A DNA stretch of 64,000 nucleotides. It comes from Thalia democratica (lineage: Eukaryota). The translations under genes were made by a program, and so were the position numbers. Below the pieces are notes generated by a model, which had not been told where the DNA came from, did no database searches, and saw only the letters and a list, made by a program, of their open reading frames with translations. Of the stretch, positions 7,001-53,290 are shown piece by piece. The first letter of the stretch is position 1. Every line of letters begins with the position of its first letter. The stretch lies in contig OZ241826.1 of assembly GCA_965202585.1 (NCBI GenBank), positions 80,042,001 through 80,106,000 of the forward strand, written 5' to 3'.

Positions 7001-10000
7001 TTACTTTTAAAAATTTAGAAAACAAATCTAAACTGAGTATTGAGTAATTCGAAAGTTTAAATTCTTAATCATTCTTGTTTGACCCTTGGTGCTGCTTTTT
7101 TCTTTATTTCTTTATTTATTTTAAAAAGTAGAATCCTTATTTTTTTAATTTTTATTTTATTTGTATGGAAAACATCGTCGTTTTGTTACTTTTTTATAAG
7201 ACAAAATTTATGTTAATAAACATTTATTATACTATGTTAAAATGAATAAAAGATATTGCAATTTGAGATTGCTACCAAGTAAATAGTCTCACCCTATTTT
7301 GTTGAGCGAAGACAGCAATGTTCTTCAGACACCATTCACATTCGCACTCGTTCTGATGATGAATGATCACCGATTTTGACATGAGAGCTTTCAGACTCTT
7401 CCCATGATGTCTGATGCTCCTCTTCCAATCCTTTGCAGTCTCCCTCCCGCTTATTGCTTGGAACTCGTTGGGGTGCATCCAGCTCTGCTTTCCCCCCAGC
7501 TCATACAAAATTGATTTGCCTGAGAAGTTATAAATGTTTAGTATAAATGTTTGTTTTAGCAAAAATTGTGTACTATTGAATAAATCTGAGATTGTTGTTT
7601 CTTTAAGTTTTGAATTTTACATTATTAAACGCACTGATAACGAAGTGAATTTAAGTTTCTACGATAAAAATTAAGACCAAAACAAAATTCTGTGTTTCTT
7701 AAAACAAGCAGCTCACAATACTGTTGTACTAAAAATTCCAGAGAAACACGACAGACTGCTGATTATTATATTAAACGAAAAGCGTAACTCGTTGTATAAG
7801 TTTGTAGTTTTCCCTATTCAAACTCGCACCAAGCTGGTTTTAATTATTTAATTAACTGTAAAATATCCACATATTCAAAGATTTCAAATTTTTTTACATA
7901 TTTACAGCATTTTAATTAAGTGAGCGGTTACAAATAAGTTTTTAAATTTTTAATTTTTTCTCAATGTTTTATTGTGCCACCCATTATAATCACGAATTCT
8001 ATAGGCTTATTGTTTGCTAACAAAGTAAAAATTGTCAATTTTGTGAGTTTATAGATTTTAATAATGCTAAAAGTTAATAAATTGTTAAAGTAACCTAAAA
8101 ATAAAATAAAGTTTTAAATTTTTTAATGCTTTTATGTAAGAAAGACACTAAGTAATAAACAAAGAAACTTGATTTGTCTGTCAAGTTTAGGTCGGTTGAG
8201 TTCAAAATTAAATGTTGAATAATATCTTAAAGTACTTGTTTTCTTAATTTTTCTTTATAAAAAAGCATATAAAACTTTTTCAAAACTTTTCTTTTCATCA
8301 AATCATTTTGTCTTAGCATATAAAAATAGAATAAATATAAATACAATAATACCATTAAACTTCACTCTGCTTTGTTTTACGCAAAAAGCTAATACAATTT
8401 ACAGATAGAGACGGCGCTCCGAGTAAAAACCGACTTAAACATGAAATGAAAACTTCTTTAAAAATACACAAGCTGCGGGTCCGAATGGAATTTCACGTTC
8501 TGGTTAAACAAACTAAAAATAATTAAGGCGAAGCATAAGGAACAGTCTGCGTTGCGAGAAGGTAATTAAATTGCAACTAAATACTTTTGCGCGCAAGCAG
8601 CTAGTGATGCTCGTGCTTTTGAGTTGCAATCTTCTTTGCAGCCTTTTTAAGTGTGAGCTGTTACATTTTTTAGTTTTAAAGTTTTTATAGGTTTTGTTTA
8701 AAACGGACCTTGACTTTTGTTATTTACTGTTCTTGATAATGTTTGTGTAAAACTAAGGACATTTTTATAATAAAATGTGAAAAAAAGCATTGACACAATG
8801 TTTATGCATATATAAGACAAATAGATATAACAGCTATTACAAAGAGCACAAATGCATTATTATTGACATATATTTTACATACATTTAATTAAATTTAAAA
8901 AGTTATTACGGTTTTGTTTGAAAGACAATTTAAGTATCTATAAAGATTCTCTAAAAATCTTTTTGATTAAATTATTTTTATAAACTTTACAAACAGCACA
9001 AATTCGTAAATGACAAAAAAAAGCTTGAGTGTTATATACTTTTAAAACAAATTACTCATTTATTTGAACAAAAGTATAAATTGCTTTTATGAAGCAAGGA
9101 AGTAAACTAAAAAAGAAAACAATATTTTATCAAAATCAGTATTTAGCAGCTTTAAACATTGCATATTTATAAAACACTAAACAAAAGTAATTTTAATAAA
9201 AATGCTCTGACAAACTTGTCTTTTAACTTTAAATAATAATTTCATTAAGTTTTTTATAACTCTTCTATTTTATAATATATTAATTATATTCATATCTGCA
9301 TCAAGTAGATATACTTATAAATATCATATAAATATATACAATATAATACATAAGCTGAACAAACATTTATTAACATAAACCCACCTTTGCTACCCTGGCT
9401 GAGTCTAGCGATGTAGAGGAGGGCATTGTTGTCGCCGCAAGTCACCTCCAAAAACTCCTCTCCTCCTTCGTCCTTCTTCACTTCTACCTCCGAGCTGCTC
9501 ACGTGACCTTTTGGCAGGTTCACCGTCCACCTGCAACCCTCCGTTGCCACGTGGTGATGGCAGGTTGCCCCTAACAACCGGTTTTGAAGTCTCATTTTGC
9601 TCACTGAACTTTTCATTGAATCTGCGGATGTTTTTAACTTGCATTTAAACAGATTTCAGTTTTAAATTTTAATAAGTTTATACATTGTAATTTTATCGTT
9701 TTATAAATAAACTTATGTATTATGTCAGATCAAAATCTTCTTTCTTAAGCTTTATTGCCTGTTTTGGTTAACATTTTGTTATCAGACTCTCTTGTAATAA
9801 TATTAGAAAATGAAAACCTTGAACTATTAATTTTTTGAGTGAGCAGCTAAAAGTAATTACAAGCAATGTATGATTATAAATACTCACCGACGACAGTTGC
9901 CTTTCAGTTTCAATTAGCTTTCTGAGATAAAAAATACAAAGTGAAAAGGCAATCACTCGCAGGTTGCGATTTTAAATGAAGCTGGAACGGAAAGGAAGGT

Positions 10001-13000
10001 CGTCAATCGATAAATTAGACTCGCAGCAAATGGTGACCACTAGCAACGCTTCTATCGACGAAGGTTGCTATTGGCAACACACAACAACGCAAAGAAAAAG
10101 CCGAATAGATAAGCTGCAATGATGTGACAAAGAATTAAAAGCGGCGATAAAAATAAGCAGCGACAGCAGCAGATAATCTCGAGCAGAAGGAAGCGAATAA
10201 CCGTGACTAGTTTTCAATGTTTGTAATTCGATGCTGCCTGTACAAACGAAATCGAATATTTGCGGTGTTAACGCGGGTGCAATATACAAACGTTGACGGC
10301 ACTTTGCGAAAAAAAAGAGAACGCCGTTCGACGCTTTGTGCCAATCAAAACGTTTTTACCTGCCGATCGTTCGCAAAAACAACGTTTGCTGTTACGTCAT
10401 AACGGTCTCTGTGTCAAAAATGCTCGCTCTCTTGTCACACAACAGGCTTTCCAGCTTTCTTCGGTACAAAGCGCCGCCCGACAGCTGACGATCGAACGAC
10501 GAGAAGCTTTTATTCATTATTTATCGCCGCTCCACATTTATATTCGCCTTTTTACGCTGCGGCCGTTTGAAACTATCTCTCTATTGAGACGTGTGAGGTG
10601 AGTGGTGCGAGAATAATTGCCGCCGAAATTCGCTGAATGATTGAACGGCAGATAAAAAGCCGACTGAGCTCTCCGCGACACTCAGAGCTTTTAGCCGATT
10701 TCAGAGGCGTGTTCCGTGATTTAATGCTTTTCAAAAACACATCGCGCGAGACAAGTCGACCTTTCAGTGTTTTAAAAATCTTAGCGAGGTGCAGCTTAAT
10801 TAGTAAGGCAGTAGGTAGAGGGTTTTGCAAAACCTTTTAGCAGAGAAAAACTTTTGATATTTTTATGCAGGCTTTTTTGCTTACTCGCAAACTTTTTTGT
10901 CATTAATTTTTGTTGTAAGCTTTCTCATTTTACACATCTAAAAACGTTAAATAGTAAAATTAAGATTTATTAGAGGCAAAAGAACTTCTGACTAGATCAA
11001 TATATTTAATTATGCTTTACATGTTTTGCATTAAAAATCAAATCAAACAAATAATGATTTAAAAAACAAACAAAAAAGGCACATCCTTAATCCTCAAAAA
11101 CACGAAAAAGTCATCAACATGTTGGCAGTCGTCTGCATTGACCTGTGTGCGAATATCGCAAGCAGCTTTTTGTTTGAAAACCGCAAACAACAAAACAACA
11201 AGAAGCTTTCTCATTTTTTCTCAAAGAAAAATAAATAATCACGTTCTCTATACATCAGCGTTGCGCAGGGTAGGGTTTTATAGCGCTGAAGATTGATTGA
11301 AACAAAAGGTAAGGTCAACGCTAATCCGCGGTGTCAGGACTTGGCACCGAAGCTACTGAAATCAGCTTTATATAGCAATAAAATCTACTTTGAGCCGCGT
11401 AGCACCTAAGCACGTGCGAGTTTGTAGGATTGATAAGTTGAATTTAAATTAGTTGAAACATCAATGCGCTAGTTAAAACCTCGCGAACCCGTAAAGCTTT
11501 GACGAGTGTAAGTTAATATGTGTAAACTTCGTTTATATATTCAGGCGCATAGTGACATTTATATAAATTAAAAAACTGATATATTTTCACTATACAGTTC
11601 AACAAAAACTTACTGTTGTTGTTAGGAGTAACGACTCTTTTTCCGTTGCTACTAACAGCAGTCGGGGACTGCTGACATTCGGCAACGGAAGTCGGGGATG
11701 ACAGTTCTGGTGATGACGTCATAGCGGAAGTTGATCTCTGTTGCGTGGAAACCAGCTGATGATGATTGAGCTGGTTGTTGCTGTGTAAAAGATGAGAATC
11801 AGGAAGAAAATAAAATAATAAAAAAAATCCAAAACGGTGTTATAGTTAATTATTAAACTTAGTTGTTAAAAAACTGCAAATTCTTTATTTTGAAGAAAAA
11901 AAAAATTAATAATAAATAATTTTTTTATTGTTATTAAGTAAAAAATCAAGTTAAGTTAATGCAAGTGACAGTTAGTTTTTTGTATTAAAAGCTGATAAAA
12001 ACACGCTTTATTCTAATTATAGTTCTAGTAATTTATAATTTTACCGTAAAAACTTTGTGTTGTCGAACATTGGCATATTAGGAAATGGCAACAAATTTTC
12101 TTGCTTCTTGTTCAAGTTCATCAGGTTTAAAACTTGTAACCTGAAAGTTTTCAGTTTTAGGCAATAACAAACTTAAAATCTGCTTGTGAAATGTTGTAAA
12201 CTTTCATTTATGATAAAATCAGTTCATTGGAAAGGTTGGAAAAGAACAAAAATAAAATTTATTGTTTTAAAGATATTTTCGCTTGCAAAATATTCAAATA
12301 CTAAGCAACAACAGATAGAAACAAATTAAATAGAGATAATTTTTTGACACTGTTTTGAGTACGTAAATTAAACGAAAGGGAACTTTGTTTTGCAAACAGC
12401 GTACCGTGCAATCTTATTTTACATTCAATATTTTTGCTGTTACAACTCAACAAGTCAGCAGTTGTCATAGCAACCAGCCACACACGCGGCAGTAAAAACA
12501 CATCCGACGAGCCCACCACGTCGCCATGTAAATAAGCTCCTTAGCAACGGTTGCCAAGTTGCGAGCTGCAATGAAGCCGATAAACACTTGAGGTCTCTCG
12601 CTTGGCAACCAAGGTGGCATGGTTGCTTGGAAACCGGGTCGTCCCGCTTTCAGCACTTCCGCACTTTTATTAAACAACTTCAACGAAAATCACCGACGTC
12701 TGCGAAGGCGGTATTAAGCTCCCTCCAGACGCGGTAAAGTAACCATATGTCTATAGTTAAAACTTTTTTCTCAATGAAAAGCTTTTTGATGTAAATGTTT
12801 TAGAGGATTAGTTTTCTATAGTCTTTAGCAATTTTTATTTGGAAGACACAACTTTATCAGTTAGTGTTACTTTGAAGTTAATAAGTTTATTATTGTCTAA
12901 AAAAAGTTCAATTACATTTACTAGTACTTTATAATATCTTTTAAATAAAATTTTGTGCGCGATTGAGTTAAATAATTTATTTTTTTCCAGCTAAGTTTAA

Positions 13001-13544
13001 ACGCCTGTAGTAAATTTTATGGTTGTTAATAAGTTCATATGTTTGTCTTTTGACCTGTAATATCAGAGTATAAAAATATTTAAAGAACTACCACAAAACA
13101 AAGCTAAATAATAAAACTTATTTTAAAGCAAACACTTCTTAAAAAAAAATTAGTAAAAATTTTCGAAATTTTAAAGGATTACAAACAACGTATTTTTTAA
13201 TCGGTTTTTCAAAAGTTGATAAAAAGATATTTTAGCTTTTGTTAAAGAACAATTTGTTTAAATACTCACCAATTAACCTGATTTTGGCCTCCAAATAGTA
13301 GCGGGTCGAACCCGGAAAATTCATCACCTTTTTGCTGCTTAGCTCCATTTATCCCACCAAAACTAGAGGGAGTTTGCGGAAATCCCCCAGGAAACGGGTT
13401 ACCAGGCAACATGGCTGCCGGGTTGTTAAGCATCCACATACTGGCAAGGTCAGGTTGAGAAAAAATGTCCCCGAACTCGGCACCTGATTGGCTTAAAATT
13501 GTCGATAAATCAGGAGAAATACCCGGAACTGCTGAAGAACCCAT
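3819..13544 (-). CDS. SAMD11: SAMD11/SAMD7-family SAND + SAM domain protein, copy A (12 coding exons, 703 aa)
   Basis: Manually spliced exons (GT-AG, phases compatible): 13270-13544, 11614-11780, 9385-9621, 7293-7519, 6748-6983, 6400-6520, 6262-6328, 6067-6115, 5122-5325, 4820-4897, 4224-4482, 3819-4010; total 2112 nt = 703 aa + TAA. SAND: EFLEVTCGDNNALLYIARLSQGSKG|KSILYELGGKQSWMHPNEFQAISGRETAKDWKRSIRHHGKSLKALMSK..HQNECECEWC, closely matching the recalled long human SAMD11 isoform (EVECGANRALLY..QGSKG..PNEFQFVSGRETAKDWKRSIRHKGKSLKTLMSK). SAM: SKWSCERVGQYLDEIDLGQYKQ|IFLDNGINGYSLPLVTEESCLGMLQMKLGHAHTLISSV. The start codon and the exon 3 and exon 5 acceptors are inferred. Confidence 0.88.
7293..7519 (-). 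CDS. Copy A exon 4: core of SAND domain (KDWK motif) with H-x3-C-x-C-x2-C tail
   Basis: Acceptor ctcAG at 7520-7521, donor AGG|GTGAGA; translation GKSILYELGGKQSWMHPNEFQAISGRETAKDWKRSIRHHGKSLKALMSKSVIIHHQNECECEWC is unchanged in copy B over this stretch despite nucleotide changes. Confidence 0.93.
8400..8645. promoter_or_regulatory. Conserved intron-3 element with homeodomain-type TAATTA core
   Basis: gtctgcgttgcgagaaggtaattaaattgcaactaaatacttttg is identical in A (~8546-8590) and B (~39752-39796), in an otherwise indel-rich intron. Confidence 0.45.
9888..10850 (-). promoter_or_regulatory. Putative internal promoter / alternative non-coding first exon in intron 2
   Basis: CpG-rich block conserved in B (41134-42070); ends at a strong conserved donor TCG|GTGAGT (9888; B 41134); CRE-like TTACGTCA in A, TGACGTCA in B; first in-frame ATG of exon 3 is conserved (9616; B 40879). 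Confidence 0.45.
12455..12725. promoter_or_regulatory. Intron-1 RFX X-box cluster (copy A; B counterpart ~43930-44200)
   Basis: GTTGTCATAGCAAC 12461-12474 (canonical GTTGCCATAGCAAC in B at 43938-43951), GTTGCTTGGAAAC 12622-12634, several half-sites (TAGCAAC, GGCAAC, GTTGCC) and an Ets-like ACTTCCG. Confidence 0.65.
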
Positions 13545-14329
13545 ATTTAGAATATTTTTGTTTTAATTAAAAGTTTTAGTTTTTACTGGATACCTGTATA
13601 ATACCTGTATAATGTATACCTGTTTTATTTAAACTAAAAGTGTATTTTGTCATTTAATACTTGTAAGTGATTAGTAAATGTTTGTAATTTAAAAAAGTAT
13701 ACTTCGCAAGATAAACTTTTTTTCTTAATAATAGATTTTAAAGCTTCCTAAAAACCAATCTGTTTAAAATTAAACGTTTTAACAATCTTTATTATGATTC
13801 TCAGTTTTATGCTGCTGTTATCAGAAACAAAAGTACTAATGACTAACTTACATATAAGTATTAATTACCAAGAAATTAAATTAATATAAAGTAGCTATTG
13901 TTTTAAATTTACCTAGTGTAATTCATAAAAAATAGTAGTTTTTAAAATATAATAAATAAAAATAATTTTAAAACTATGTTAAAAAAAAATTGAAAATTTT
14001 AATTAATTAATAACAAAATTAATAACCAAAGATATTTCTTTTCAATGTATTATTCTTAACACCTTAAACCTAAACAACAACTTATTCAAGTTTTTGAAAT
14101 TTTGAACACTACACTTTCGCGCTTATTGATTATCTAAAAAGGATATATAAGAAGTTATACAGTAAAAAGGGTTTTACATTTTTGATTTATCAAAAAAAAA
14201 AGCACTGTAAATGTTTAATTAAAGTTAATTAAGCTTCTGGTACCCAAGACATTTTTAAAAACAATATCTAGTCGCATCCAAACACTTTTAAAACAGAAAA
14301 AAATCTTTGGAGAATTAATAATAAATAAG

Positions 14330-14960
14330 ACAATCTCGCTCCTCTTAGCATCTCGTTACCACGGCAACCGACTACGACCGTGGCGACGACCGATGAGGAA
14401 GACAGATTGCGAGATTATGTCGCGGTGACGGACCTCGGCGAAACGAGGCGAAATCGTGTTAGCAGAAGCGCGCTGTGTAAACAGCGAAAGCCTTGCGGCG
14501 CGTTATGCGAAATACCGCAATCACTTTTCATCGTTTGTGTTTGCGGTGAAACACGCAACGAAAAACACACCGAGCGAAAATCATTGCCCCTTTGCTTTTC
14601 AACAGCTTTTTCTTCTTTAAAACAAAAAAAAAAACAGCGACGGCCTCTAACGAGTTGACAATTAGCGAGAGAAGAAATTAGCGGCGCGTTGTGTGTGGTA
14701 GCTGAAAGCAAATTTGAAATCGCGTGTCTTGAGGCTAGCGGAAAAAGAAGCGAGGTGAAATTAGCGATGTCGGCGACAGATTTGCTTTTTTGTTCGGAAA
14801 CTGAAGTGAAGGCGACAGTTTTCGACATACCACTTGTCTGTCTCGTTTTTTTTGTTCGCTTCTCCAAGTAATTTCGACATGCTGATTGTTTGTTAAATGA
14901 TTTCTGATGGAATACCAGGTATGGAAAGTGAAAGAAATGCTTGACACTAGCTAACAAGAA
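14330..14960 (-). promoter_or_regulatory. Putative main promoter of copy A: CpG-rich island with RFX X-box
   Basis: GC/CpG-rich block ~0.8 kb upstream of the ATG, conserved in B (45700-46390); GTTACCACGGCAAC at 14355-14368 matches the X-box consensus GTNRCC-N0-3-RGYAAC. Confidence 0.6.
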
Positions 14961-16399
14961 CTTTATTGTTTGTTTAAAAAATTAAAGTTTTTATAAATAG
15001 ACTATTTAATATTGTATTAGGTAGAATTAAAACAGTTAAAAGTTAAGCAAAATAAGAATCTGTATATGAGCATTTTTAAAAGCTTTTACAAAGCGCAGAG
15101 AAAAAATAATTCACCAAAGAAATCCGTATGGCTTCTGCTAGCATGCAAGTGGCCATCGGAGACTATGACTTTATGTAAGCTAACTTCTAAACGCAAAACA
15201 AAGTTTCTATGCTGCCAGAAAAATGAGCTTTCTTTACGCCTGATAATTCGGCGCCTTTAATTAGCGGCATGTGAGAAGCTGACTTCACTTGGAAGCCATA
15301 AAGAGAAGCCTCGAGTTCAAATGATTCTTATAACTTGCCCTCACCTAATTTCGCTGCTTCTTATCTTTCTGAGATTATTACTTCGTTTCGTTCACTAGCA
15401 AGCTGCTGTCACTCGTGAAATTAAAGAAAAGGCAGCTAGCTGCTGAGATAATTTTGCTTTGCTCGACGGCACAGCGCTTTAAAAAGGGGTTGGTAGTTTT
15501 GAAGGGTGTCTAATAAAATCTCGCTGGTGTTCTGCATGTGTTGTGTAATTTCGTTGAGATTTTTGAAGAGCCCGCAGTTAAACAATCCTTTAAATATTTT
15601 TACGGCGTCGCTAAAAAAGGCAACTTTTTTCTTCCTTGATTTTTACGCATACTTTTGTTAATTCAGTCTAGTTGTTCGCTACTAAGTTTATTCGATGCAT
15701 AGTTAGTTTACAATCTTTGTTTGTCTACCAATGACTATTGCTTCACTCAAGTAATAGAATAAAAATGACAAAATGTTATAGAACTGTTAGTTCAGGCTTT
15801 CAAAACTATTCAAAACATTTAATTTATTAAACTTTTAGAATTAATTCTAAAAATATGTAAACGTAAAGGTGTCAATTAATTTTGTTGTTAATAAAATTAA
15901 ATTTTTTAAATTTATCAAAAAATTGTTTGCTACATAAAGTCTAGTTGTTTACTGTTATAGTATTATTTGCTTCTAACAGTTTAAAAAAAAAGCATTTATT
16001 TTGTAGATAAGAGTAGCTAGTATCTATATTTTGGATGTATGGATTATTAATAGCTTATTGTATAGTTTTAATCTAAAACAATTTTAGTATAAAAAACAAT
16101 TGTTTACAATCAATAAAAAAAACCTGTTTTAAATCAAATTATTTGTTAAGTTTTCGTTAAACTGATGTTGAAAAATATTCTAAAAGTTTCAAGTCTCGTT
16201 TTTTAAAGTAGTTACCAAAACTGTAAAAAAATATCAAATAACTTCAACTACTTATTTTAAGTTTTTGTTCATACCATCTTTAAAATAAAAAGTATAGTTG
16301 ATCGAATTAACTTTAAAAATCTAAACCTGAACTTTTAAAAAACAATATACATATAACAAAAGTAACTAAATAGTGTGTTTCAAATAAAAACTTTTCAAA

Positions 16400-16930
16400 C
16401 CAGCAAACAGCTTATTAACCACTTACGAAAACAGAATCTCGATATTCAAAACTTCGACAAGCTTCCAAAGCTGCCGTCTCGCTTTGCTTCTGCTACAAAA
16501 TAAAAAGCTTCTGCTCGTCGGCTTGCCGTCGAATGCACTTCTTTCCGCCGCTCGCCTCTCTCCGTGTCGCCGCTCAGCAAACTTTTAATCGCCGCCGCTG
16601 TTGCTCGAAAGTGAAAAAAGAGAGAGGAGACGAAGCATCAGATCACACACGACCCTTAAACAAAGCCGCCACCCCTCAAAATTTCGCCCGTGCGACTGAA
16701 AAGCTGCTGTCGGGCTACGAGGGGTCGTAATTGTGAGGGCATAGAAGGCAATAGCCTTGCTGTGCGGTTTGCGAGGAGAAAACACCGCGCTTGTGTTAGG
16801 AGAATGTGAGCTTATATTAGCTTCGTTGTTGTGCTTTCGGCCGACGTCGCTGGTTTTTGGTGAGTGATTTTTCTTGGTAAGTGGATATTTTATCGGTAAG
16901 CAAAAAAGTTTTCTGTAAAATTTTTAGTTT
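16400..16930 (+). promoter_or_regulatory. Conserved CpG-rich island upstream of the gene; possible divergent first exon
   Basis: High identity to 47820-48370; conserved plus-strand donor TTG|GTAAGT at 16877-16882 (B 48326-48331); no credible protein. Confidence 0.4.
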
Positions 16931-19900
16931 TTACAGTTTTTTAGTAATACAAATATCATCGAAAAAATAAATTGCTCAAATTGTTAACGAACAAGAAACA
17001 GCGTTTCGAAAAATTTCACTGCTTTCACCGTTCAGCCACCTGCTTGTGACGTCATAATTCTCACAGAGTTCTAACTTTTTTCGGTGAAAGTAACAACCAA
17101 TCTAGCGCTCGTGGAAAAACATCATAAATCAAACAGAAGGGATTTCGCGTTCAAATTTGTAAAATGTTTCCCATGGGAGAAGGATAAACCGCTAATTTGC
17201 AGTGCATTCAGTTACATGCTGATATGTAACTTGTTATTAGCGCTTTAAAGTATGCGAGTTTGAATATTATTTCGCAAAGTTCGGTGGTAATTAAACCGCG
17301 AGGTCGTTCGGTTAGTCGATAAATCGAACTGAAATTCGCGTTTAAATGAAGAATGTAATATATAGAGTAGCGGTTTATGAAGGCCATTGGGAAAATCGAG
17401 TTACGATTCCCTCACGGCCGTTCTGGTTAGTAAATGTTTTAAAGCGCGCTTCAGTTCCAAGATACTTCATTTTTGATATTTTATTAGCTGCTTGAAGCGG
17501 CTTGATTTTGCTGAAATTAAATTTTGCTTTTATTCGTTTTACATATTTTATAAAACTTGTATCTCGCAACTGAATCCTTTATTAGCAAAACTAAATTTTT
17601 GCAAATGTTTTGATGAGTAACTCATAAGTTGTGTTGTAGAGGTTATTTTATTAGCTTTTTCAAAATTTAAGTGATGGTACTGTGCTACATTGATAATTAA
17701 TAGGGATTTTTTATCAGGTTGATCTTACTGAAGTTGTTTAAGATTTCCAAGAAAATATATACTTGCAATAATGAAAAAAAAAAACTTTAGTTTTAGTATA
17801 GATAGTACAAGTTTTAGTTTTTGAGCCTTTAAAAGTGAGGTTGTTTTATAATTAATGTTTAGTAATAACTTTGTATAAAACAATAACAATTAGTAACAAA
17901 ATATGAAAAATACTTTTTTGCATAGCTATGAAAAGCATTACTTATTTGAAAAATATTTTAGCAAAGTAAAATCTTTTTGTAATGTTTTATAGTTATCGAG
18001 TTTAACAAACAAATAGTATTTATAGATTGAGTTTGTTTTGCCATATTACAGTGCATTTTAGATATAAAACTTTCTAAAGCAAACGTTTTTGATCGCTTGA
18101 ACTCAGTTTTACAGTTAGTAATTAAATTTTTCATTTCTTTATTTTAAACCGTGGAGGGCAGTTAAAATTAAACTTACTAAAATATCGCAAAACTTATCTA
18201 TTACCAATACAAAACATTTTGCTTAAAACTAGTGTATAAATTTTTATTTTCACTAAAACTACTACTACTATTGATAAACAGTATTTACACTAGTTGAACA
18301 GTTGAGATTTGACAAAAAATGTCTTTAAATTAATATAAATACAACATTAACCTATCTATAACAAAAAAATTTTCGAAGACTGTATGTCAAGTAAATTTGT
18401 TCATTGAAAAAAGAAACAATCAGACGAACTATATAAACTTTCATTCTACTAAGACTTCATTCATACTAATATAAATTAAATTATAGTTTGTAAATGTTTT
18501 GTTTACATTGTTTTTAATAATCTGATTTATTTTTAAAAGTTATTTTCATTTAAAGTTATCTACTTTAAATCAAAGCAAAGATAAAAAAGATAAACTTTAA
18601 CAATCAGACTTTTTTAAAAGTTTTTTTCCATTGAAACTTATCTACTTAAACTTTCAAGCAAAAACAAAAACTCCTTAATAAAGTTCCTGAAACATAAGAG
18701 ACAATTTTCTTTTTGTAGTAAGTTAGGTTATATTCGCATACAATAAAAAAATAGACCAATTTACACTGATTTTGTAACTGTAGTTTTATACTAGTAAATG
18801 GCAGAATGGAAACAAAAAACCTATTATTTTGTATTTTACTCCCCACATTTCAAATGCATCATTGATGTTCAGTTAAAACTCCCTACATTTGAAACATAAT
18901 AAACTATAATTTTTTTATCTGTAAGTTTAAACAAGATACACTGCACAAAACTAAAGTTTTTATGAACCTTATTTGGTGAAAAAGATATTTTTTTCGCGAA
19001 ACTAAGCTAGTATAGTTGTTTATGTTAATTTCTAGAGCACACTATGACATTAAAAAGCATCAGTCATTTTAATTTAATTTAAAGGAAACTTCACTAGACT
19101 ATTGTTTTTTAAGTTTTTAAAATAAATGTAAAAACATTATCTTGAAAATTTAATGCGCATTACTTATACATTTCTTAGAAAATAGTATTTTATTGAATTG
19201 TATAGCTAAGTTTGCAATAAAAATCTTTAACTATCAAACTTATCTTCAAAAAACGTTTTGCAAAAAACACCTTATTTCAAAAAGAAAATTTTATAAAAGA
19301 CTTACGTATTTAATATATTAATGATATAACATTTTGTTTTAATATTTAAATTTAAGTTTTAGTACAATTATTTTTATTTAGCTTAGTATGAATTCCATAC
19401 GTAAGCTAATCTTACATTTTGACTTAAATGCACACTAACTATTTTTTTACAAGAGTATCACTATATATTTAGTAAAGCAATCAGTAATACGTTTCCTAGT
19501 AGATTTAATGTATTTTACTCGATGACCTTTTATTTTATACGTAAGAATGGTATTATAATTAATTTAAACGATATTTGATTATTTACAAAAGTTTTGTTTA
19601 TATTACAAATTTTAGTATAATTATCGTGACTTAAATTTTATTTAGTGGACTTTTACAACTTGCTGAGATCGTCATTACAAGCATATCACACACAAAATTT
19701 GTAATAATAATGGTTTTTAATACTTTTTAATAATTTATAGTTTGTGTTTATCAATCATTGCTGAATTAGCGTAAGGGTAATAAATGTTTTAATGTTTTAT
19801 TTGTTTTTTGAACTATTGTATTCTCTTTTTCTTTAGTCAATTTTTATTTTCTTCGTACTTTTCAAAGTATTTAAACTTAATATTTTAATGACTAACAATG

Positions 19901-22529
19901 GTGAATTTTAAGATTAAAATACCTCATAGTCTAATAGTTTATTTAATAATCTTGTAGTTTTGTTTTTGTTGTTTAATTATTATTTTTAGTATATTTAATA
20001 AAAAGTAATGTCAAAATAAATGCCTTAGTTTTTTATAAACAGTTTGTTTATAAGTTCTTCTAAGTACTAGTATGAAAACTTAATAACATAATATCTATAC
20101 AGCATGTTAAAACTAAATAAAGTAAAAACTTGATTTTTATAATTGTTGTGTTAAGTTCAAGTACTAATAGTTTATATTACTGTAATCAATAACAAAATCA
20201 AAGTTAAATAAAATAATTTTTACAGTAAACTATGAACATTTTTACTAATTTCATATACTAAAGTTTATCCAGTTTAATAATAACTTGTGGTTAATATTTT
20301 ACGTTTATTTGTTAAACAATTATACATTTTACGTATTTTACGTAAATACTTTATTTTTCAAACGATTTTTTTCATTTAATGTGTCCTGCAAAGTGCTTTT
20401 GTTTTAGTAGATCTTGCCATTCCTCTAAAAATGCTGCCGACCTCTGACTTATGTAAAAGTTTATATTGATAGATCGGCTTTTAAAGTATTTTCATGAACA
20501 ATTTTGGTTCACATTTGTTATAAACTACCTACTGAACGCAAAATTTTAACACTTTAGTTTTAAAGGTAACGGTTTAGTTTTCATAGGTATAATTTACTTA
20601 TTATAAATAACAATCAACATGTTTTTGAAGAAAAAAAAACTAACAACACACACTTATCCAGCACCTGCTTATCAAGACCAGTAAGAAGGCAACGTCGTTG
20701 GCAAAGTGGCAATAAAAGCAAAAAAAGAAAAGCTTTTGTTGTCATCATTTTAGTACTGTTCAACCACATCTCATCTCTTTCATTCCCCGTTGACTTGTAA
20801 ATGCCCCTTATTACGCATGACAGCCCCTTTACAGATAAGAAGCAGCGACACGACACACAAGTTGCACTTCTTTTTCTCTCGTCAGCAGAAGACACACACA
20901 ACAGTGAATTAGAAAGGCGACAAAAGAAGCGGCTTCTGACGTCACAAACAAAAAATTCGTCGTTTAAGTTTTTTCTTTTTGTTCGAAACTCGCGTCCTCA
21001 TTAGTTGTATTTGCTCCGCTCGATACGAGATTGTTTTCGAGATTCCACCGTCGAGTAATTGGCTCAAACAACGTTTTTGTTTCGATGAGTTTCATTTATT
21101 GCATAATAATATTTATAGTTTATTTTATCATATAGCTTTTCTAAGTACTTCGATCGTAATTTTAAGTGCACTTTGTAAAGCATAAATATCCTGTAAACCG
21201 AACTTATTTTACATAACAGTTTCTACAATCAATCATCAGGCAATAAAAAAATAAAAATTTTTTTATATACTGAAATTATAACTTTTTTTATTCCATGTAA
21301 AACTATCATAGCACGCAATTTCAAATAAGAACGAGCTACGCCTGATAAAATTAATTTTATACAAACTGTTCAAACTACAATGTACGGTAATAATTAAGTT
21401 GCTATTGACAAAAATGTTTTAAGACTCTTTAGGATATGAAGTTATGTTTTACCACCAACAAAACAATTGTTTATTGTAAACAGTTATTGTTTTCCAGTTT
21501 TTAAAACAACTATTATTAAGAAAAACTTTATTACAAAATTGATATCTAAATTTTGGAAAACTCAAAGATTAAACACCAAAAATCAATTTAAGTTATAAAA
21601 AATTTACAGGTAGATAAACTTAGTTATGATGAAACTATAAGGAGCTTACCTAATACTAATAAATATTATCTTTATAAAAATATTCTAACGTTTAGTAAAA
21701 TTGAAAGGTTTTAATTAAACTGTAGTCGTTTTAAAAGTGTAAATAAAACACAGATATTGAAAGTATACAAAAAAAATCAGAACTTTAAAGACCTAACACA
21801 AGTTTATCAGCTTAAGTTTCTTAGCGTAAACTAGTAAAGTTATAAAACTATGAAAAAAAAGTAGTTTGTTAAACTAAAAAAAACTTAACTCCTAAAATTT
21901 TGATATAAAAAAGTATTTAAAACTAATCTTTGAGTTTAGTTTTTAATTTATCTTTATAAAAAAGCAATATATTATTTTTATAACAGAATAAGATTATCCT
22001 AGCAATGAAACGTTCAACAAATAACGTTGAACTTCGAATATGTGATTAATGGGTGCACAATAAACTTAGTTTTAAACTTTCTCTAACTTTCCTTCTAACT
22101 AGGGTTCTTATGTTACTTAATTAGAGTCTTAAATTAGCAATGGAATTTTTGTGGTATTCATAAAAATCTATTAATGTTACTATACAAACTAAAAACCTAA
22201 GCAAAATATAAAATTTAATCAAAAAAAAAAAAAAACATCGACTAAGCATAACTTCAAAATACGTAACTGTTAAATTTTAATAAAAAGTTATTAATATTTT
22301 AATTAGTAAAATACAAACAGCTCTCAAAATTTTCCTAAAAAAATTAGAAGATCGAAATTTAAAAAGTTGAATTACTTTTTAATTAAAAGCTTATTCTTGC
22401 TTAATAAAATAATTCAGTTTAAGCAGGAGTTTTCTTTTAATAAACAGTTTAAGTTAACAGTTGTAAAAATACAATTTTAAATAAAGATTTTCTTAATCAA
22501 TCGTTATAATATATTTTCAAACAAAATTA

Positions 22530-25500
22530 ATACCTGCTTGTTCCGGCAACCCACTGCAACACTTCAATCTTTTATAAACTACGGAAGTGCTGACTAACCA
22601 ACCTTGTTGCTAAGCAACCATGCCACCTTTGTTGCTACGTGAGATGCGATCAGCGCTTATCTGCTTAATTTGATTACAGATATGCTCGTCTGTTGTTTAG
22701 TAACCATTGTCAGCGAAAAAGTTGTTTGAACAGAGACAGTTTTGTCAGTTTAGCTTGTATGCTGTGTAATTCCGCTTGTTACCAGACTTTTATGTTGTTT
22801 ATTAGTAACAACGTAGACATACTAAGTAGATCCTCCCTGTTTCTAACACAATTTGTTTTATGTTTTATGTTGACGGTTTAGTAGGTATAATAACAAATAA
22901 GCAGTTTGGTATCTGTAAAGCTAAAGTAATCTAGTTTGATTTGTTTTTCTATCTTGTTTACTGTTGTGTAACCAAAACTCTACTGTTTACACTTCACAAT
23001 ATTTATTTAAGTTTTAATTTATGATCTTAAAATGATGTCCTTAAGTACATATACATAAGCAAAAACTTAGAACCAAATTAATCGGGCATAAACTTAATTA
23101 AATGTTTTAAAACCTGTACGTTTTTTATTAGGAGTCAATTATTGCAATAAAAATTAATAACAACTTTCGAAAATGATTTAGATAATATTTAATATTTTAA
23201 AAGTACAATAAGTCAAGTATCTGTATAATTTGTTTTTTGGTAAAATATAGTTTTTTTTTTAATTTTCCACAGCAACTCAATCATGATCAGCTGGTTTCCA
23301 CGCAACGAAGGTTCACTTCCAATGTGACGTCATAAAAGTAAAATAAATTTAATCGACATATGCTTTGGTGGCCATCGTTAATATAAGCAATTAAGCGAGG
23401 GTCAATGCCCGTAACAACGAAAATTGATTTTTTTTAACGAATGAAATTTTTTTGAAAAGTTAACTTTCTACTAATTTATAACTTTTTCTTTTGTTTTATG
23501 AGCTGTTTTGTTAAATCTTAAAGTTTGTTAAATACTTACAAAATAATATTATAGTAACAAGTTTGTTTTTACACATCGGTGCCATAAAATTAATAGAAAC
23601 CAGAAAAAAAACTTTTAGTTAATTGTGTTTTTACTTATATAACTTGAAATTTTTACACTACACATTCTGAACCTGTCACTTCCGAATGCTTAAAACCCTT
23701 CAAAATTGTCACCCTGGTCGACAAAGTTGGAAAGAATGACTTTCGTTACCAGTGCGACGTGTCAACGTGTTTACGGTTCAAGTTTGCATATAAACCCACC
23801 TAACACCAAATTAAAAGAGCAAACGAATGTCACTTTCGTCCCTTTTGTGTTGCTTCTAAAAGATTTATGTGATTTTGAAAAGCAAAGGTTCGTAAAAAAA
23901 AACGAAGTTTTTGAAGTTGCTTCAAAAACGCATTTTTTTCAAGTGTCGAAAAAATTTGTTATAAATCTTTTGAACTATTAATTCTGCTCGTCTCATAGTT
24001 AAATATTTCTGTAAAACCTGCAATGTGTGCTTCATCAGCTACAAACCAGTTTAAAAAAGATCAACTTGCCGTAACTGCTAATCTTGAAGCTGAGGTAGAA
24101 AGCCAAAAACCGTGAAATGGTAATGACCTATCGTTAAAACCTTCTGCGTGGAGATAATTAGAGTAAAAAAAAAACCGATGTTGAGAACTCAGAAGGGATT
24201 TTGATTGACTATTTTAGAAGAGAAATAGCGAGAGGGCTTCTTGTTGTTTTGTTGTTGGCGGTTTTCAAACAAAAAGCTGCTTGCGATATTCGCACACAGG
24301 TCAATGCAGACGACTGCCAACATATTGATTTTAGAGTTGTGAAATTTTATCACATTAGTTGTCTATTTTTAAATTTGTCGTGTTTTAATGTCTGCTATAA
24401 TATTGTAGACTTAATTATAACTTCTGATGTAAATAGTAACGCGAAAAGAAGTAAAAACACTAGTTAAAAAATTATTAATTACCAATATTTAAAAATAGTT
24501 TGTTATAGGTTAAATTTAATTAAAGACAGTTAGCGAATATGAGCTTCACTGAAAAAAATAACATAATTTTTTAGTAGAAGCTAATTATGATTTCATTATT
24601 TTTGACACAGATCAGTTTTAGTTTTTAATTAAAGTTTATAAGTGTATGGTTGTTGTATGATTGTTTCATTATATATTTTATTATAAAAGCTGCCTTTAAT
24701 TAACATAAGAAAATAAAAGTTTCAAAAAACATAAGCTGTGAAATAGTTGCTGGTTGAAAGTAGTTATCGAGACAATCGAACGTTAACTTTATTCCTATGG
24801 TTCTAGTTAAGCAGCAAAACCTTTAAAGCTAAATATATCTAGTTTTTTTAAGGGATATAGACGTTAAAGTACTCAAGTTCAATGTATTCCTGTCGACTGA
24901 TTTAAGTCAGTAAGGAATGTACGAATAATTTGTTATTTAAGTTCTAGAATGTACTTATACAATAGATAAAATTACAAATGCATTTCATACATTTTATTGG
25001 TTTACAAAGCTCTCAGTTACTTTTTAGTTAGTAATGTTATTTAAAAATTACAAAAATGATAATTCTAGGGATATTTATAAAATTAGTAGTTGTAAAACAC
25101 CTTAGGTAAAATGAAAAAACTTAATTACTTTTCTGGTACAAAACTTTTTAAAAGGTTTTGATTAATAGTTTAAAATGTGTTTTCAAAGGGCGTACAACAA
25201 AATGTGGTTTTAGTAGCAAAAGGAAATTTAAAACATACTAAAAAAAACTTAACAACTATCGATATTCGCATTTCAAATATTTATCTGTAAGCAAAGCTCA
25301 GCCGTTAAGTTATTTTTTTTTAGAAAATGACAAAATTAGAAAGCCCGTTTCTAAAAGCAATAAAATATCACGACTGAATTGTTGTAAACACAAAAGACGA
25401 ATATAATCGACACGACATGCATTGTTTTAGTTTTGCAAACAACTTTAATGTTCGCCACACGCGTTTACATTTGCAAACTCTCGATTTTGCTCGAACAAGC

Positions 25501-25830
25501 AGAAGAACCAAAAATAAAACTGTCGAGAATGCTTACTGAAACTTATTTTTGTATCACAAAAGTCACAACTTTTATACGGCTGCTTTTTATTGACAATCTC
25601 CGTCGTTGGATATTTTCTGCAATTTATCGATTGACGAGAGCTTTCTCGTTTTGTCCAAGTTTCCTTTTAAACCTTCGGCCTGTCGTTTACTATCACGGCT
25701 TTTTTTTGCGAAGCTAATGCGAAGTCGAACAAATGGCTTGCGAGAGTAAAGGTTTTCCTTATCTAAATTTTCAGCAGCAGTAAAGTAAGAAGTGCGTTTT
25801 ATTGATTTAGACAACGAGTGACAAAAGTAG
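22530..25830 (+). pseudogene. Inverted non-coding relic of SAMD11-like intron 1 - exon 2 - intron 2 (B counterpart ~50650-53850)
   Basis: 22570-22640 is the reverse complement of the 12600-12690 RFX cluster; 23273-23332 is a plus-strand exon-2 copy with acceptor ccacAG and a 7-nt deletion; 24236-24328 is the reverse complement of 11114-11206; weaker match of ~25340 to ~10720. Confidence 0.75.
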
Positions 25831-27559
25831 ATGTAAAGTTTTTATAATTATTAATCATAAAAGTTAAAAAAAAAGCATTTGTACTAATATTTTGTGTTAA
25901 AAATGTTTAAATTTAAGCTAACCTAAAAACTATCTGTAAGCTGAATTTTTTTAAATTTTAAATTAATTTGTAGATTTAAATGGTTCCGAATACTTTAGTA
26001 CGACATATCAAACTACAAAAATTTAAATTTTGAAATCGAAAGTCAGACTTAAATTCTATCAACTAAAATTCCAAATTCCTAATTTCCAAAAATTCAAATT
26101 TATTATTAGAAGTTTTGACATTTAAAATACAACAGCTCTATATATAACAATTCTAAGTAGTTTAAACTTCAAGTAACTTTAAAGAATTAATTGTTTTGAA
26201 CGTTAAGTTAGTATATATTTATTTGTTTGTTTTGATATCTTATAAACTAAAAATTTATTTAAAAAAGTTTAACTATAAAACTTAAATTACGTTAATTGAA
26301 ACTATAAAAATTTCATTCACGAAAATTCTAATTTGATAAATGTAAAATGTTTGTAATTCTATTTGGTTTGTCCAAACAAGGACTTTATAAAACCTAAAGC
26401 TAAAATATTTAAATTTGTACTTAAATAAAAAAAATATTGAATTAGTCAATATAAAGTTTTTTTGTAAGAAAAAGACTATGCATTAAAAAAGTCATTGACG
26501 ATTTTAACAAAGTTTAAAGTCATGATAGGTAGATTTTAAGAAGCTTTAAATTACCGATGGCTGATAACAACTATTTTAAATAATTATCTTTACAAGAATA
26601 TTTAAGAAGCTTTAGGTATCTGGTTTAAACATCAACAAACATAATAGTACCTTTACATAATAATAACTAAAAGCTGTCAAGTTTAATGTTAAAGAATTAA
26701 ATTATTTTTAAAGAATTATGTAACAGAAAAAAACTAGAAGTTGTTAAGAATAAAATGTATCGTTTTATTAAAAAGCTTCCAGCTTTTATACATGTGCTTA
26801 GTTCTTAAAATAAAAGCTATCTTTTAGTTTTTATGAGTTTTTTTGTCTTAAGAATTTAACATATGTAAAAACTGCATACTAAAACCAATGCCTTTCGAAT
26901 AGACAAATTTAAACTTACAATAGAAACACAAAAGTAATATCTTCCGCTCCAACTAAACTTTTTGATATTTCAGCAAAAATTTCTCGCTAAAAAAGCCTGT
27001 TTTATAAATCTGATTTTATTTTTACTCTCAGCTAAGCTAAATGACCGCTTAAATCATTCGATTACATAAATCTTGAGTGCACACAAGATGTTATGATCGA
27101 TTTATTTTTACATGAACTTTTGGAAATGAGACCTTGTGCCAAAGTTCTATTTTAGTTGCACACAACTTTAAGTTTTAGAAGCGTATTAAAAGATAAGTTT
27201 ACTCTTTAAATAATAATCATAAAAAAGTTTAAAGATCATTAAACAAAGTAAAGTAAATCTAACAACTGCATAATTATCATCTAGAGCTAACTCATAACAC
27301 TAATAACAAAAAAAGCTTGTTTGGTGAGAATTTTTTTGTTAATTTTCGTTTACAAATATATATTTCTTTTTTTCGATTTTCAAGTTAGTAAAACTAACAA
27401 GAATTAATTATAAACATGCTATTTTGTAATATGCAAAACAAAAAGTTTTACAAAAAGTTCATGAAAAATTGACAAATATTACATTTACAATTCCTGACAA
27501 GCGAGTGAACTTTTAAAATAATTTCAAAAGTTCGATGAAAATTCAGCAGCCGAATATCG

Positions 27560-51000: not shown

Positions 51001-53290
51001 TTTATTTAAGTTTAAAATTTGATAGTATTAATTTAATAGAATAATGTGTTTTAGTACATAAACAAAAACGAAAATTCAAAACTAAACTAGTATAAAATAA
51101 ATTAAATGTTTTAAAAGTTGTACAATTCTTATTAAGAGTCAATTATTTTAATCAAAAATAGTAACAAACTTTGAAAAATATTTTGAAAATTTAAAAAATA
51201 CAATAAGTCAAGTATTACTAAAACTTTAGTTTTGGAGAAATTTATGTTTTTAATTTTCAACAACAACTCAATCATCATCAGCTGGTTTCCACAAAACGAA
51301 AGTTAACTTCCTGTGTGACGTCATAAAAGTAACATAATTTGAATCGACATATGCTTTAGTGACCATCGTTAGGCGAAGTCTAATGCCGTAACAACAAAAA
51401 TTTATTTTTTTAACGAGTGAAAACTTTTAAAATAGTTAACTTTCTACTAATCTCTTTTTTTTTTAATAAATGCTTTTCTAAATTTTAAAGTTTACTAAAA
51501 TAATTACAAAATAATATTAAAGTAACAGGTTTTTGACATCAGTGTCATAAAAGTAATAGAAATGAGAAAAAAACATTTAGTTAGTTGGGTTTTAACTTAT
51601 ACAACTTGAAATTTAAATGAACCAACGAATGTCACTTCTGTCCCTGTTGAGTTGCTTCTAAAAAAATTATGTGAATTTGAAAAGCAACGGTTCGTAAAAA
51701 AAACGAGGTTCTTGAAGTTGCTTCAAAAACGCATCTTTCTTAAGTGTCGAGAAAAGTTGTTAAAAATATTTTAAACTTTTAAACCTGTTCGTCTCATAAG
51801 TATTTCTGTAAAATCTTCAGTGTGTGTTTCAACAGCTACAAACCAGATTAAAAAAGATCAACTTGCCGTAACTGCTCATCCTGAAGCTGAGGTAGAAAGC
51901 TAAAAACCGTGAAATGGTAATGACCTATCGTTAAAACCTTCTGCGTGGAGATAATTAGAGTAAAAAAAAACCGATGTAGAGAACTCAGAAGGGATTTTGA
52001 TTGACTATTTTAGACGAGAAATAGCGAGAGGGCTTCTTGTTGTTTTGTTGTTGGCGGTTTTCAAACAAAAAGCTGCTTGCGATATTCGCACACAGGTCAA
52101 TGCAGACGACTGCCAACATATTGATTTTAGAGTTGTGAAATTTTACCACATTTGTTGTATATTTTTACATTTGTCGTGTTTTCATGTCTGCTATAACATT
52201 GTAGACTTAATTATAACTTCTGATGTAAATAGTAACGCGAAAATAAGTGAAAACACAAATTAAAAATAAGTAATTGAGATTATTCAAAAATAGTTTGTTA
52301 TTGGTTCAATTAAATTGAAAACAGTTAGCTAATGTGAGTTTTACTTAAAGAAATAACAAAATATTTTAGTAGAAGTTAGTTATGTTTCGTTCTTTTTGAC
52401 ATAGAATAATTTTAATTTTCACTTAATGTTTTTAGTTGTATGGTTGTTTTAAGTTAAGTTTTAATTTTTTTTAAAGCAGTTTTCAATTAACAAAAGTAAA
52501 TAAAAGCTTTAAAAAACATAAGTTATGAGGTAATTGCTGGTTGAAAGTAGTTATCGAGATAATCGAACATTCATTTTATTCTAGTGGTTTTAAATTAGCA
52601 GCACGACAAGTAAAGCTAAATACATCTAGTTTTTTAAGGCATATAAATGTTAAAGTAGTTAAGTTGAAAGTATTTTTTTCGACAGTTTTAAGTCGTCAAG
52701 AAATGTACGAATACATTTTTCTTTATTTTCTAGAACGGAATAATACAACAAGTGTCTTTTATAAACTTTATTGGTTCACAAAGCTCTCAATTACTTTTTA
52801 GTTATTAATGTTATTGAAAAGTTATAAAAATTTGATAATTCTAGGGATATTTATAAAATTAGTAGTTGTAAAACACCAAAGGTGAAACAAAAAAACTTAA
52901 CTATTTTTATTTCGACAAAACTATTTAATAAGTTTTAATTAATAGTTAAAATAGTGTTTTCAAAGGGCGTACAACAAAATGTCGTTTTAGTACCAAAAAG
53001 AGATTTATAAAATACTAAAATGACTTAACAATTGTCGATTTTCGCATTTCAAAACTTTCTCAGTGAGCAAAGCTCAGATGTTAAGTTGTTATTTTTTATA
53101 TAATGACAAAGTTATAAAGCCCGTATGTGAAAGCAATAAAATATCACGACTGAATTGTTGTGAACACAAAATACGAATATAATCGACACGACATGCAATG
53201 TTGTAGTTTTGCAAACAACTTGAATGTTTGTCACACGCGTTTTACATTTGCAAACACTCGATTTCGCTCGAATAAGCAGAAGAACAAAAA

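Follow-up and report, generated by a model that had tools for sequence, protein, structure and literature searches.

A non-coding block of about 100 bases lies in the first long intron of a duplicated SAND-SAM gene and recurs, nearly unchanged, in truncated and inverted copies of the front of that gene. We read it as a conserved non-coding module (about 95-135 nt) of the 5' cassette in a tandemly amplified SAND-SAM family, a candidate cis-acting element kept alike by selection and gene conversion together. The probability that we assign to this reading is about 40%.

Copies of the block in the window and in the genome

The window, the 64-kb stretch of DNA analysed here, holds copies of the block in genes A and B and in two relics (Table 1). 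The near-identity described in the initial annotation was confirmed: 11114-11206 on the forward strand and the reverse complement of 24236-24328 differ at two sites, 11118 (C versus T) and 11185 (A versus C). An exact 48-mer is common to 11119-11166, 24276-24323 and 52072-52119, a match given by none of 100 shuffles, and a repeat search returned 110-nt arms pairing 11113-11222 with 24220-24329 and with 52016-52125 at 94%. The two relic copies had been called identical, and they are so over a 130-nt run of relic1 (24220-24349). The gene B element differs from that of gene A at 9 of 94 core sites, as had been counted before, and the flanking DNA barely aligns, gene A and the relic being alignable in three islands only. 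On its upstream side in gene sense, the gene A element is a mosaic with the paralog L006g. Sub-blocks of the core were found to recur nowhere else in the window.

Table 1. Coordinates of the block, its host features and related zones in the 64-kb window
Feature	Position	Strand	Description
Element core, relic1	24236-24329	+	Gene-sense orientation; equals the consensus of all ~20 genomic copies
Element copy, relic2	52016-52125	+	Repeat arms, shared 48-mer, 130-nt identity
Intronic element copy, gene A	11113-11222	-	~400 nt 3' of the exon 2 donor; 2 changes from consensus
Intronic element copy, gene B	42348-42456	-	9 differences from A, 7 from consensus
Exon 2, gene A (predicted from sequence)	11614-11780	-	Acceptor ttttacacag, donor GTAAGT; one frame open throughout
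Relic island 1'	22576-22670	+	Promoter-like block; homologous to gene A 12570-12667
Relic island 2'	23263-23337	+	Acceptor-like CAG, first ~60 nt of exon 2, GTGACGTCATAA
Near-identity zone, relic1 versus relic2	24041-24440		94-100%; partner ~51837-52236; ~80% background outside
Zone conserved between relic1/relic2 and L022	24202-24369	+	91-92% over 168 nt; core 92/94, next 31 aligned nt 29/31
Candidate antisense small ORF, relic1	24192-24323	-	44 codons, MLAVVCIDLCANIASSFLFENRQQQNNKK...; doubtful, part of a rival reading only

A census of the genome gave about 20 copies of the element, and each occupies the equivalent place in a SAND-SAM paralog or a relic-type 5' cassette. This is not the pattern of many dispersed hits that would mark a young repeat, and a dispersed repeat or transposable element was ruled out by the lack of copies at unrelated genomic places. 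Ten copies belong to a gene-type class in which the whole intron can be aligned. The relic-type class has at least eight copies, which have only three collinear islands in common with the gene, and its cassettes are arranged head-to-head, 10-25 kb upstream of gene copies. Exact-pattern scans of viral contigs and of JGI metagenome contigs, the latter scanned twice, gave no match to the element.

The relic had been described as having outlived its host gene copy. The phrase is apt because the relic is not a single decayed copy but one of at least eight recurrent truncated 5' cassettes. The islands retained alongside the element carry promoter-type motifs, with an ETS-like ACGGAAGTG and an X-box GTTGCTAAGCAAC in island 1', and in island 2' the gene homology ends sharply at a TGACGTCA palindrome. 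In the scenario that we propose, the front of the gene would have been duplicated in inverted orientation at a time that preceded both the expansion of the cluster and the divergence from a related marine species. The duplicated front would have comprised the promoter-like island, the start of exon 2 with the TGACGTCA palindrome and the intronic block. The remaining coding part would have been lost, and the truncated cassette would have been co-amplified with the gene. Such co-amplification would account for the head-to-head cassette upstream of most gene copies, and retention of ancestral sequence plus conversion would account for the 98% identity.

Purifying selection and gene conversion on the same block

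The cores of relic1 and relic2 are the exact family consensus; other copies carry 2-12 changes. Comparison with a related species came from Tara Oceans contigs, two of which were found by protein search with spurious ORFs over the element. Three such contigs come from another species, because none has a near-identical match in this genome. In one of them, L022, which is possibly a chimeric metagenome contig joined across the repeat, the core agrees at 92 of 94 sites and the aligned flanks at 94 of 174 (Fisher p = 2e-16). These flanks are 52-58% identical as aligned here, and the best flank matches in the genome reach 82-83%. At 17-18% divergence, the probability of two or fewer core differences is below 2e-5. 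The initial annotation had made the idea of a selected module depend on conservation in sister species, and in L022, from a related species, the core is conserved.

Within the genome, older gene-type pairs have a core/flank divergence ratio of 0.23-0.7, similar to that of exon 2. In the young clade of A, L004 and L007, the intronic core diverges 1.45-1.8 times faster than the flanks. Constraint is not general, because the core of this clade is no slower than its flanks, and the intronic element in young gene copies now evolves about neutrally. CpG-based inference is uninformative here because the genome lacks CpG depletion (CpG observed/expected 1.15). The proposal of a selected module is supported by a core that has changed much less than its flanks, both among old paralogs and in the related-species contig. 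As judged by these sequence comparisons, the block is shown to be under strong purifying selection in the relic1/relic2 cassette lineage.

Conversion has left its own traces. The relic-relic zone of 94-100% identity, about 400 bp long, is wider than the zone conserved between species and is best read as a recent gene-conversion tract. A tree of the flanks groups A, L004 and L007 with support of 100/100, whereas the element-region tree rejects this group (AU p = 0.023) as well as a five-copy clade of the flank tree (AU p = 0.006). At two sites L004, L007 and B share derived states, at one of them together with L014, L006 and L010, but gene A has the ancestral or relic state at both. Tree incongruence, the homogenised relic tract and the reversal of gene-type states in A lend support to gene conversion between inverted repeats, which had been offered earlier as one explanation of the identity. 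The alignments and trees show short-tract conversion to have copied the block between both relics, and a relic-type copy was probably the source of conversion into gene A. Logan contigs of two runs, built from raw reads, break at 24102 and 24418, as expected if 24.1-24.4 kb is a true near-exact repeat in the reads.

Rival readings of the block

The block could be functionless; its similarity would then be due to nothing more than repeated gene conversion between paralogs, a local mutational cold spot, or homogenisation toward consensus in assembly or polishing. Conversion is demonstrably active at the locus, a consensus-identical sequence would also be expected from polishing with multi-mapped reads, and the young gene copies are without constraint. 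However, conversion within one genome does not explain why an independently assembled contig from another species agrees with the core at 92 of 94 sites when its flanks are 17-48% diverged. In addition, the raw-read contigs end just where the near-identical zone does, as would be expected of a real repeat, and the core/flank ratio of older paralog pairs points to slower change in the core. A lack of function is doubtful. The same holds, to a similar degree, for the reading in which a non-coding cassette transcript would include the block as an exon, alone or with its splicing regulator, and the gene would have it as an alternative 'poison' exon. The putative exon would run from an acceptor TTTCAG or TTTTAG at about 24220 to CACAG/GTCAAT at 24299/24300, and the conserved 30-70 nt downstream would pair back and hide the weak donor. 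Most copies have AG and GT dinucleotides at the putative splice sites, preceded by a branch-like TTAAC, and four of five relic-type copies retain an AG on the exon-2' acceptor or only a few nt away from it; the GT of the putative donor lies inside the predicted hairpin, and the 77-nt segment in A would shift the reading frame. Yet GTCAAT is a poor donor with half of the conserved block beyond it, conservation is lower (76%) over the first 15 nt of the putative exon, and the pairing is without covariation. As weak negative evidence, none of the indexed RNA runs contains even 5% of the words of 23200-24500; the three runs that did match were DNA-like and gave depth peaks of multi-copy sequence and contig breaks only.

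The hairpin itself had prompted the suggestion of an intronic structured or small RNA, that is, a miRNA-like or snoRNA-like gene processed from the intron and the relic transcript. The described stems are present in relic1, namely the 11-bp outer stem of 24253-24263 with 24312-24322, the CTGC/GCAG stem and the TGCGA-TAT-TCGCA hairpin. Conservation is uniform over about 95 nt, and the consensus copy forms a hairpin of about 70 nt with z from -2.8 to -3.3 on either strand (relic copy against shuffles, -2.8 sense and -2.95 antisense; 141-nt cross-species block, -3.3 antisense, with -1.5 sense). The gene A copy folds no better than shuffled sequence (z -0.24 and -0.75), the values for gene B are -1.3 and -1.8, and no compensatory changes separate the species. 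Across 19 copies, where low variation limits the power of the test, paired cells stand at the shuffled level (sense 91.9% versus 92.0%, antisense 89.8% versus 90.1%) with one compensatory cell only, and RNAalifold did not recover the hairpin. Rfam 15 gave no matches in the whole window at gathering score; at E up to 10, the best over the element was a bacterial wcaG motif (22 bits, E 0.35), and nothing relevant was found. The suggested RNA is not supported by the covariation, RNAalifold and Rfam results, nor by the fold of the intronic A copy. The stem is also interrupted, unlike that of a miRNA precursor, and a C/D-box reading was rejected on the deletion of the TGATGA box in relic1, relic2 and the Tara copy, which are the best-conserved copies. 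An snRNA-type promoter motif, GTGACGTCAYAA, was derived from 12 U6 and 10 U1 loci of this genome, where it lies at about -84 in U6 and -76 in U1. Some 900 nt upstream of the element, the relic cassette has GTGACGTCATAA and, 43 nt further on, TAATATAA, a spacing similar to that in U6; with the U1/U6 upstream profile the palindrome alone scores (E 0.04-0.09). Unlike the snRNA-type promoters of this genome, the element has no such PSE within 150 nt on either strand; with no TGACGTCA in that interval and no profile match at the element, an snRNA-type mini-gene was rejected. A small-RNA gene is on balance quite improbable.

In an equally remote reading, a micropeptide ORF would begin within the block on the strand opposite that of the gene, with 44 codons in relic1 and 34-58 in other copies. 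A coding signal is absent in five of six frames, and the sixth, antisense frame 0, has a weak surplus of synonymous changes. Its pN/pS is the lowest of all frames (0.32), and its distinct changes are 27 synonymous and 56 non-synonymous, against an expected synonymous share of 21% (p = 0.011 uncorrected for six frames, about 0.07 after correction). The two changes that separate the relic1 core from the related-species contig are synonymous in this frame, 17 of 19 copies retain the antisense ATG, and about nine have an open ORF. Against this, 9 of the 19 copies carry frame-breaking indels, the peptide tail is 76% conserved, below the 94% of the 31 nt upstream of the ATG, and a search among 5.8 billion proteins found no homologues. 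In a protein atlas, language-model recognition of the ORF was 1827, short of the 2300 that is typical for real families, and its top match scored 0.76; protein searches that used the antisense ORF or P0153 as query brought nothing further. The gene-sense coding frames (pN/pS 0.67-1.5) were rejected, as was a signal-peptide-like ORF, MRKLLVVLLFAVF, in A, whose ATG is present in A and L006g only. We infer that what is constrained is the sequence as such, not a fold or a protein product.

The module is most likely a candidate cluster of cis-acting protein-binding sites, an intronic or 'shadow' regulatory element of the cassette, and it may act as DNA or as a sequence-specific site in the cassette RNA. 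It may be an enhancer, as the initial annotation had suggested. Several observations count against this cis-regulatory reading or give it no help. A cluster of short binding sites would not usually be conserved almost evenly over about 95 nt, and in relic2 the promoter-like island 1' is partly decayed though the element is perfect. No transcription-factor motif was identified in the block, and it contains no RFX X-box, though the locus holds 10. An unlikely variant is that the 'relic' is a live, selected transcription unit, a promoter-only SAND-SAM derivative kept head-to-head upstream of its parent, with the block as its functional product or key site. The block could then be a new small non-coding RNA, an antisense micropeptide of 44-58 residues, or a docking site used by the cassette to regulate the neighbouring gene copy.

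Relation to known systems

The block illustrates how a short non-coding module can persist after the coding part of a gene duplicate has gone, and how purifying selection together with short-tract conversion can yield near identity between otherwise unalignable sequences. For annotation, inverted 'dead' SAND-SAM gene fronts should be treated as candidate regulatory or non-coding units, not as junk, and the hairpin should not be entered as an RNA gene. The intronic position of the block and the hairpin of its consensus copy recall intronic miRNAs and snoRNAs, from which the block differs in the interrupted stem, the shuffle-like fold of the host-gene copy, and the lack of an Rfam match and of compensatory change.

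Interlocus conversion between inverted or tandem segmental duplicates is known from the palindrome arms of sex chromosomes and from globin and opsin clusters. The SAND-SAM locus resembles these systems in its sharp-edged near-identity tracts (about 400 bp), in the incongruence between tract and flank trees and in the reversal of lineage-specific substitutions. Unlike in those systems, the tracts are very short and centred on one element, and conversion alone does not explain the conservation across species. Duplicated conserved non-coding elements and shadow enhancers can persist near paralogs. The block departs from them in that its copies lie in truncated, inverted gene fronts co-amplified with the gene and are constrained in some cases only. 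The likeness in sequence is that a non-coding block of about 100 nt has been kept beyond its neutral flanks in old paralogs and across species, retained together with promoter-type islands, either upstream of its source gene or in the first intron of that gene.

Copies of the element and their genomic setting

The AT-rich window (29% GC) is a tandem segmental duplication whose unit measures ~31 kb. Its CpG observed/expected ratio of ~1.15 (CpG is not depleted) suggests that germline CpG methylation is low or absent in the region. The element lies ~400 nt into the 2-kb intron after exon 2 of gene A, a SAND-SAM gene whose paralogs include gene B. A search of the 800-Mb assembly found ~20 copies, the majority within C1:79.9-80.19 Mb and the remainder on C96 and at C2:22.45 Mb, C1:82.06 Mb and C1:90.1 Mb. 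A young dispersed repeat, named beforehand as an outcome that would count against the element, was rejected, as the copies are gene-type or relic-type.

The gene-type copies (n=10) can be aligned to gene A along the entire intron at 72-92%. The relic-type copies, truncated inverted copies of the gene front, number at least eight: relic1, relic2, L005r, L008r (with a partial second copy), L011r, L012r, L013r and L019r. They align with one another across several kb, whereas only three collinear islands align with the genes. Homology of island 2 ends abruptly at a TGACGTCA palindrome. Coordinates place a relic-type cassette 10-25 kb upstream of six gene copies, head-to-head. Judged from this three-island class, the relic belongs to an old type of truncated 5' cassette that recurs in the genome.

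Other features of the locus were also observed. The window contains 9 occurrences of TGACGTCA, where 0.45 are expected. It also has ten full RFX X-box palindromes, GTTRCY(N0-3)RGYAAC (0.1 expected from shuffles), some of them inside the promoter-like islands of relic1 and relic2. A GC-rich block in gene A intron 2 (10450-10800, 42% GC) has a mean pairwise identity of 0.80-0.85 among 11 paralogs, equal to the conservation of the element; it gave no Rfam match and is not present in relic-type cassettes. Another conserved island of the relic-type cassette, 25540-25870, is likewise family-limited; its 12 genomic copies are confined to the same cluster and C96 and include sites without the element (C1:79954781, C1:80174101 and C96:6378). 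Relic2 is missing ~200 nt of relic1 (23641-23840) and has an insertion at the position corresponding to 25512.

Features of gene A, the islands and related sites (window coordinates)
Feature	Position	Strand	Remarks
Gene A		minus	SAND-SAM gene
Gene A SAM exon	4215-4493	minus	
Gene A SAND exons	7272-7562 and about 9400-9616	minus	Pfam SAND; 490 relatives at E up to 0.001
Gene A exon 2	11780-11614	minus	CAG acceptor, GTAAGT donor
Island 1, promoter-like	A 12570-12667		ACGGAAGTG + RFX X-boxes
Island 2	A 11713-11790		first ~60 nt of exon 2
Island 3			the element itself
Signal-peptide-like ORF	11059-11214	minus	also at the homologous place in L006
RFX X-boxes	6858, 10064, 13398, 14355, 22606, 38755, 43938, 44882, 45806, 50690		pattern scan of window

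Near identity and gene conversion

The matches described in the initial annotation hold. The sequence 11114-11206 is the reverse complement of 24236-24328 with mismatches at 11118 and 11185 only, relic1 and relic2 are identical across 130 nt (24220-24349), and 9 of the 94 core positions distinguish gene B from A. An exact 48-mer is common to 11119-11166, 24276-24323 and 52072-52119 (0 matches in 100 shuffles), and a repeat search of the window gave arms of 110 nt at 94% identity.

Gene conversion, which the same annotation had offered beside selection, is borne out by the relic tract, the element tree and ancestral states in A. Relic1 and relic2 share ~80% identity overall and 94-100% over 24041-24440. 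This zone exceeds the cross-species conserved part (24202-24369), and a recent conversion tract best accounts for the identity beyond that part. Given such conversion, identity between the relics does not count as separate evidence for selection. In two runs, contigs built from raw reads break at 24102 and at 24418, the behavior expected of a true repeat. The flank tree (2880 columns) groups A with the genomic copies L004 and L007 (100/100), then B (96/96) and then L014 (93/97). In the element-region tree A joins the gene-type copy L006g (91/93), and this region rejects both the (A,L004,L007) flank clade (AU p 0.023) and the 5-copy clade (AU p 0.006). A and L006g have in common a 35-nt segment adjoining the core. 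At two sites A keeps the ancestral or relic state, in contrast to derived states shared by its relatives: T stands at the AGC/AGT site in all six other cluster gene copies and at the AAG/AAT site in four copies. A donor of relic-type or ancestral-like sequence probably converted a short tract of A. The 98% match between A and relic1 therefore reflects ancestral sequence retained in the relic, together with this probable conversion.

Through the converted A/L006g segment an ATG arises on the gene-sense strand, and with it a signal-peptide-like ORF (MRKLLVVLLFAVFKQKAAC...). This ORF was rejected: the ATG is missing in other copies, and pN/pS in the frame is ~1.5.

Constraint on the core and its possible cause

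In relic1 and relic2 the 94-nt core matches exactly the majority consensus taken over all copies; each of the others has 2-12 substitutions or indels, mostly private. A spurious ORF spanning the element, used as query against a protein collection, led to two Tara Oceans metagenome contigs, L022 and L023. L022 is relic-type and shows two features peculiar to relic1/relic2, the 17-nt deletion and the downstream flank; the gene-type L023 is nearest the C2 copy (82%). The Thalia democratica genome has no near-identical match to these two or to a third contig, which carries a SAND exon (best flank identities 82-83% and 76%), so by sequence comparison their source is a related species, present in marine plankton metagenomes (L021, L022, L023; SAND exon 91-95% nt identity). 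In that species the element is present both as a gene-type copy in an intron and as a relic-type copy in a cassette, which indicates that both cassette types are older than the species split.

Between L022 and relic1, 92 of 94 core positions and 29 of 31 in the next aligned stretch agree, against 52-58% identity in the adjoining aligned flanks (core vs flanks, Fisher p 2e-16). Assuming 17-18% divergence, the probability of two or fewer core differences is <2e-5. Among the older gene-type pairs, core divergence relative to the flanks is 0.23-0.7, near the ratio for exon 2. In the young clade A/L004/L007, divergence is 9.6-12.8% in the core, 6-7% in the flanks and 0.6-1.8% in exon 2; since the core exceeds the flanks, its intronic copies are under no detectable constraint at present. 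The proposal of a selected module therefore stands for the core across species and old paralogs, but not for these intronic copies. That the element has no function is improbable.

The best-supported account of the block is evolutionary: it would be a constrained non-coding module of the truncated 5' cassette, co-amplified. As to mechanism, we tentatively favor a cis-acting protein-binding module (probability about 0.4), because the constraint appears to bear on the sequence itself, not on base pairing or codons, and because promoter-type islands were retained along with the block. No X-box lies inside the element, and its sub-motifs do not recur elsewhere in the window.

A small or structured RNA is quite unlikely. 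The stems named in the initial annotation are present, but its hairpin gained no support: paired cells amounted to 91.9% on the sense strand (92.0% in shuffles) and 89.8% on the antisense strand (90.1%) with one compensatory cell only, RNAalifold on the copies did not recover the hairpin, and the gene A copy folds like shuffled sequence. The Rfam search gave no match for the element. Gene-sense reading frames hold no coding signal. The element is hardly likely to be a gene-sense exon running from TTTCAG| to CACAG|GTCAAT; the dinucleotides agree, but GTCAAT is a poor donor, with half of the conserved block downstream of it. A micropeptide from an antisense ORF (conserved ATG, 34-58 codons, 44 in relic1) is very doubtful, even though pN/pS is lowest in this frame (0.32) and its 83 distinct changes include 27 synonymous ones where 21% would be expected (p 0.011, uncorrected for six frames). 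Half of the copies carry frameshifts, conservation is higher in the 31 nt preceding the ATG than in the ORF tail, no homologues were found, and protein-language features do not recognize it. The protein-binding module remains our preferred reading.

Comparison with snRNA promoters

An snRNA promoter signature was derived from 22 U6 and U1 loci of the Thalia democratica genome (L032-L053). All sampled genes carry GTGACGTCAYAA, at about -84 in U6 and -76 in U1, and the U6 genes have an additional TATATATA at -31. An snRNA-type mini-gene was rejected for the element, as GTGACGTCAYAA does not occur within 150 nt of it. Elsewhere in the relic-type cassette, 23324-23435 (and 51315-51430) contains GTGACGTCATAA and, 43 nt on, TAATATAA (41 nt in U6), with a T8 run ~40 nt beyond. 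The stretch 23273-23420 is 82-88% conserved across five relic-type copies and may be a U6-like small-RNA promoter.
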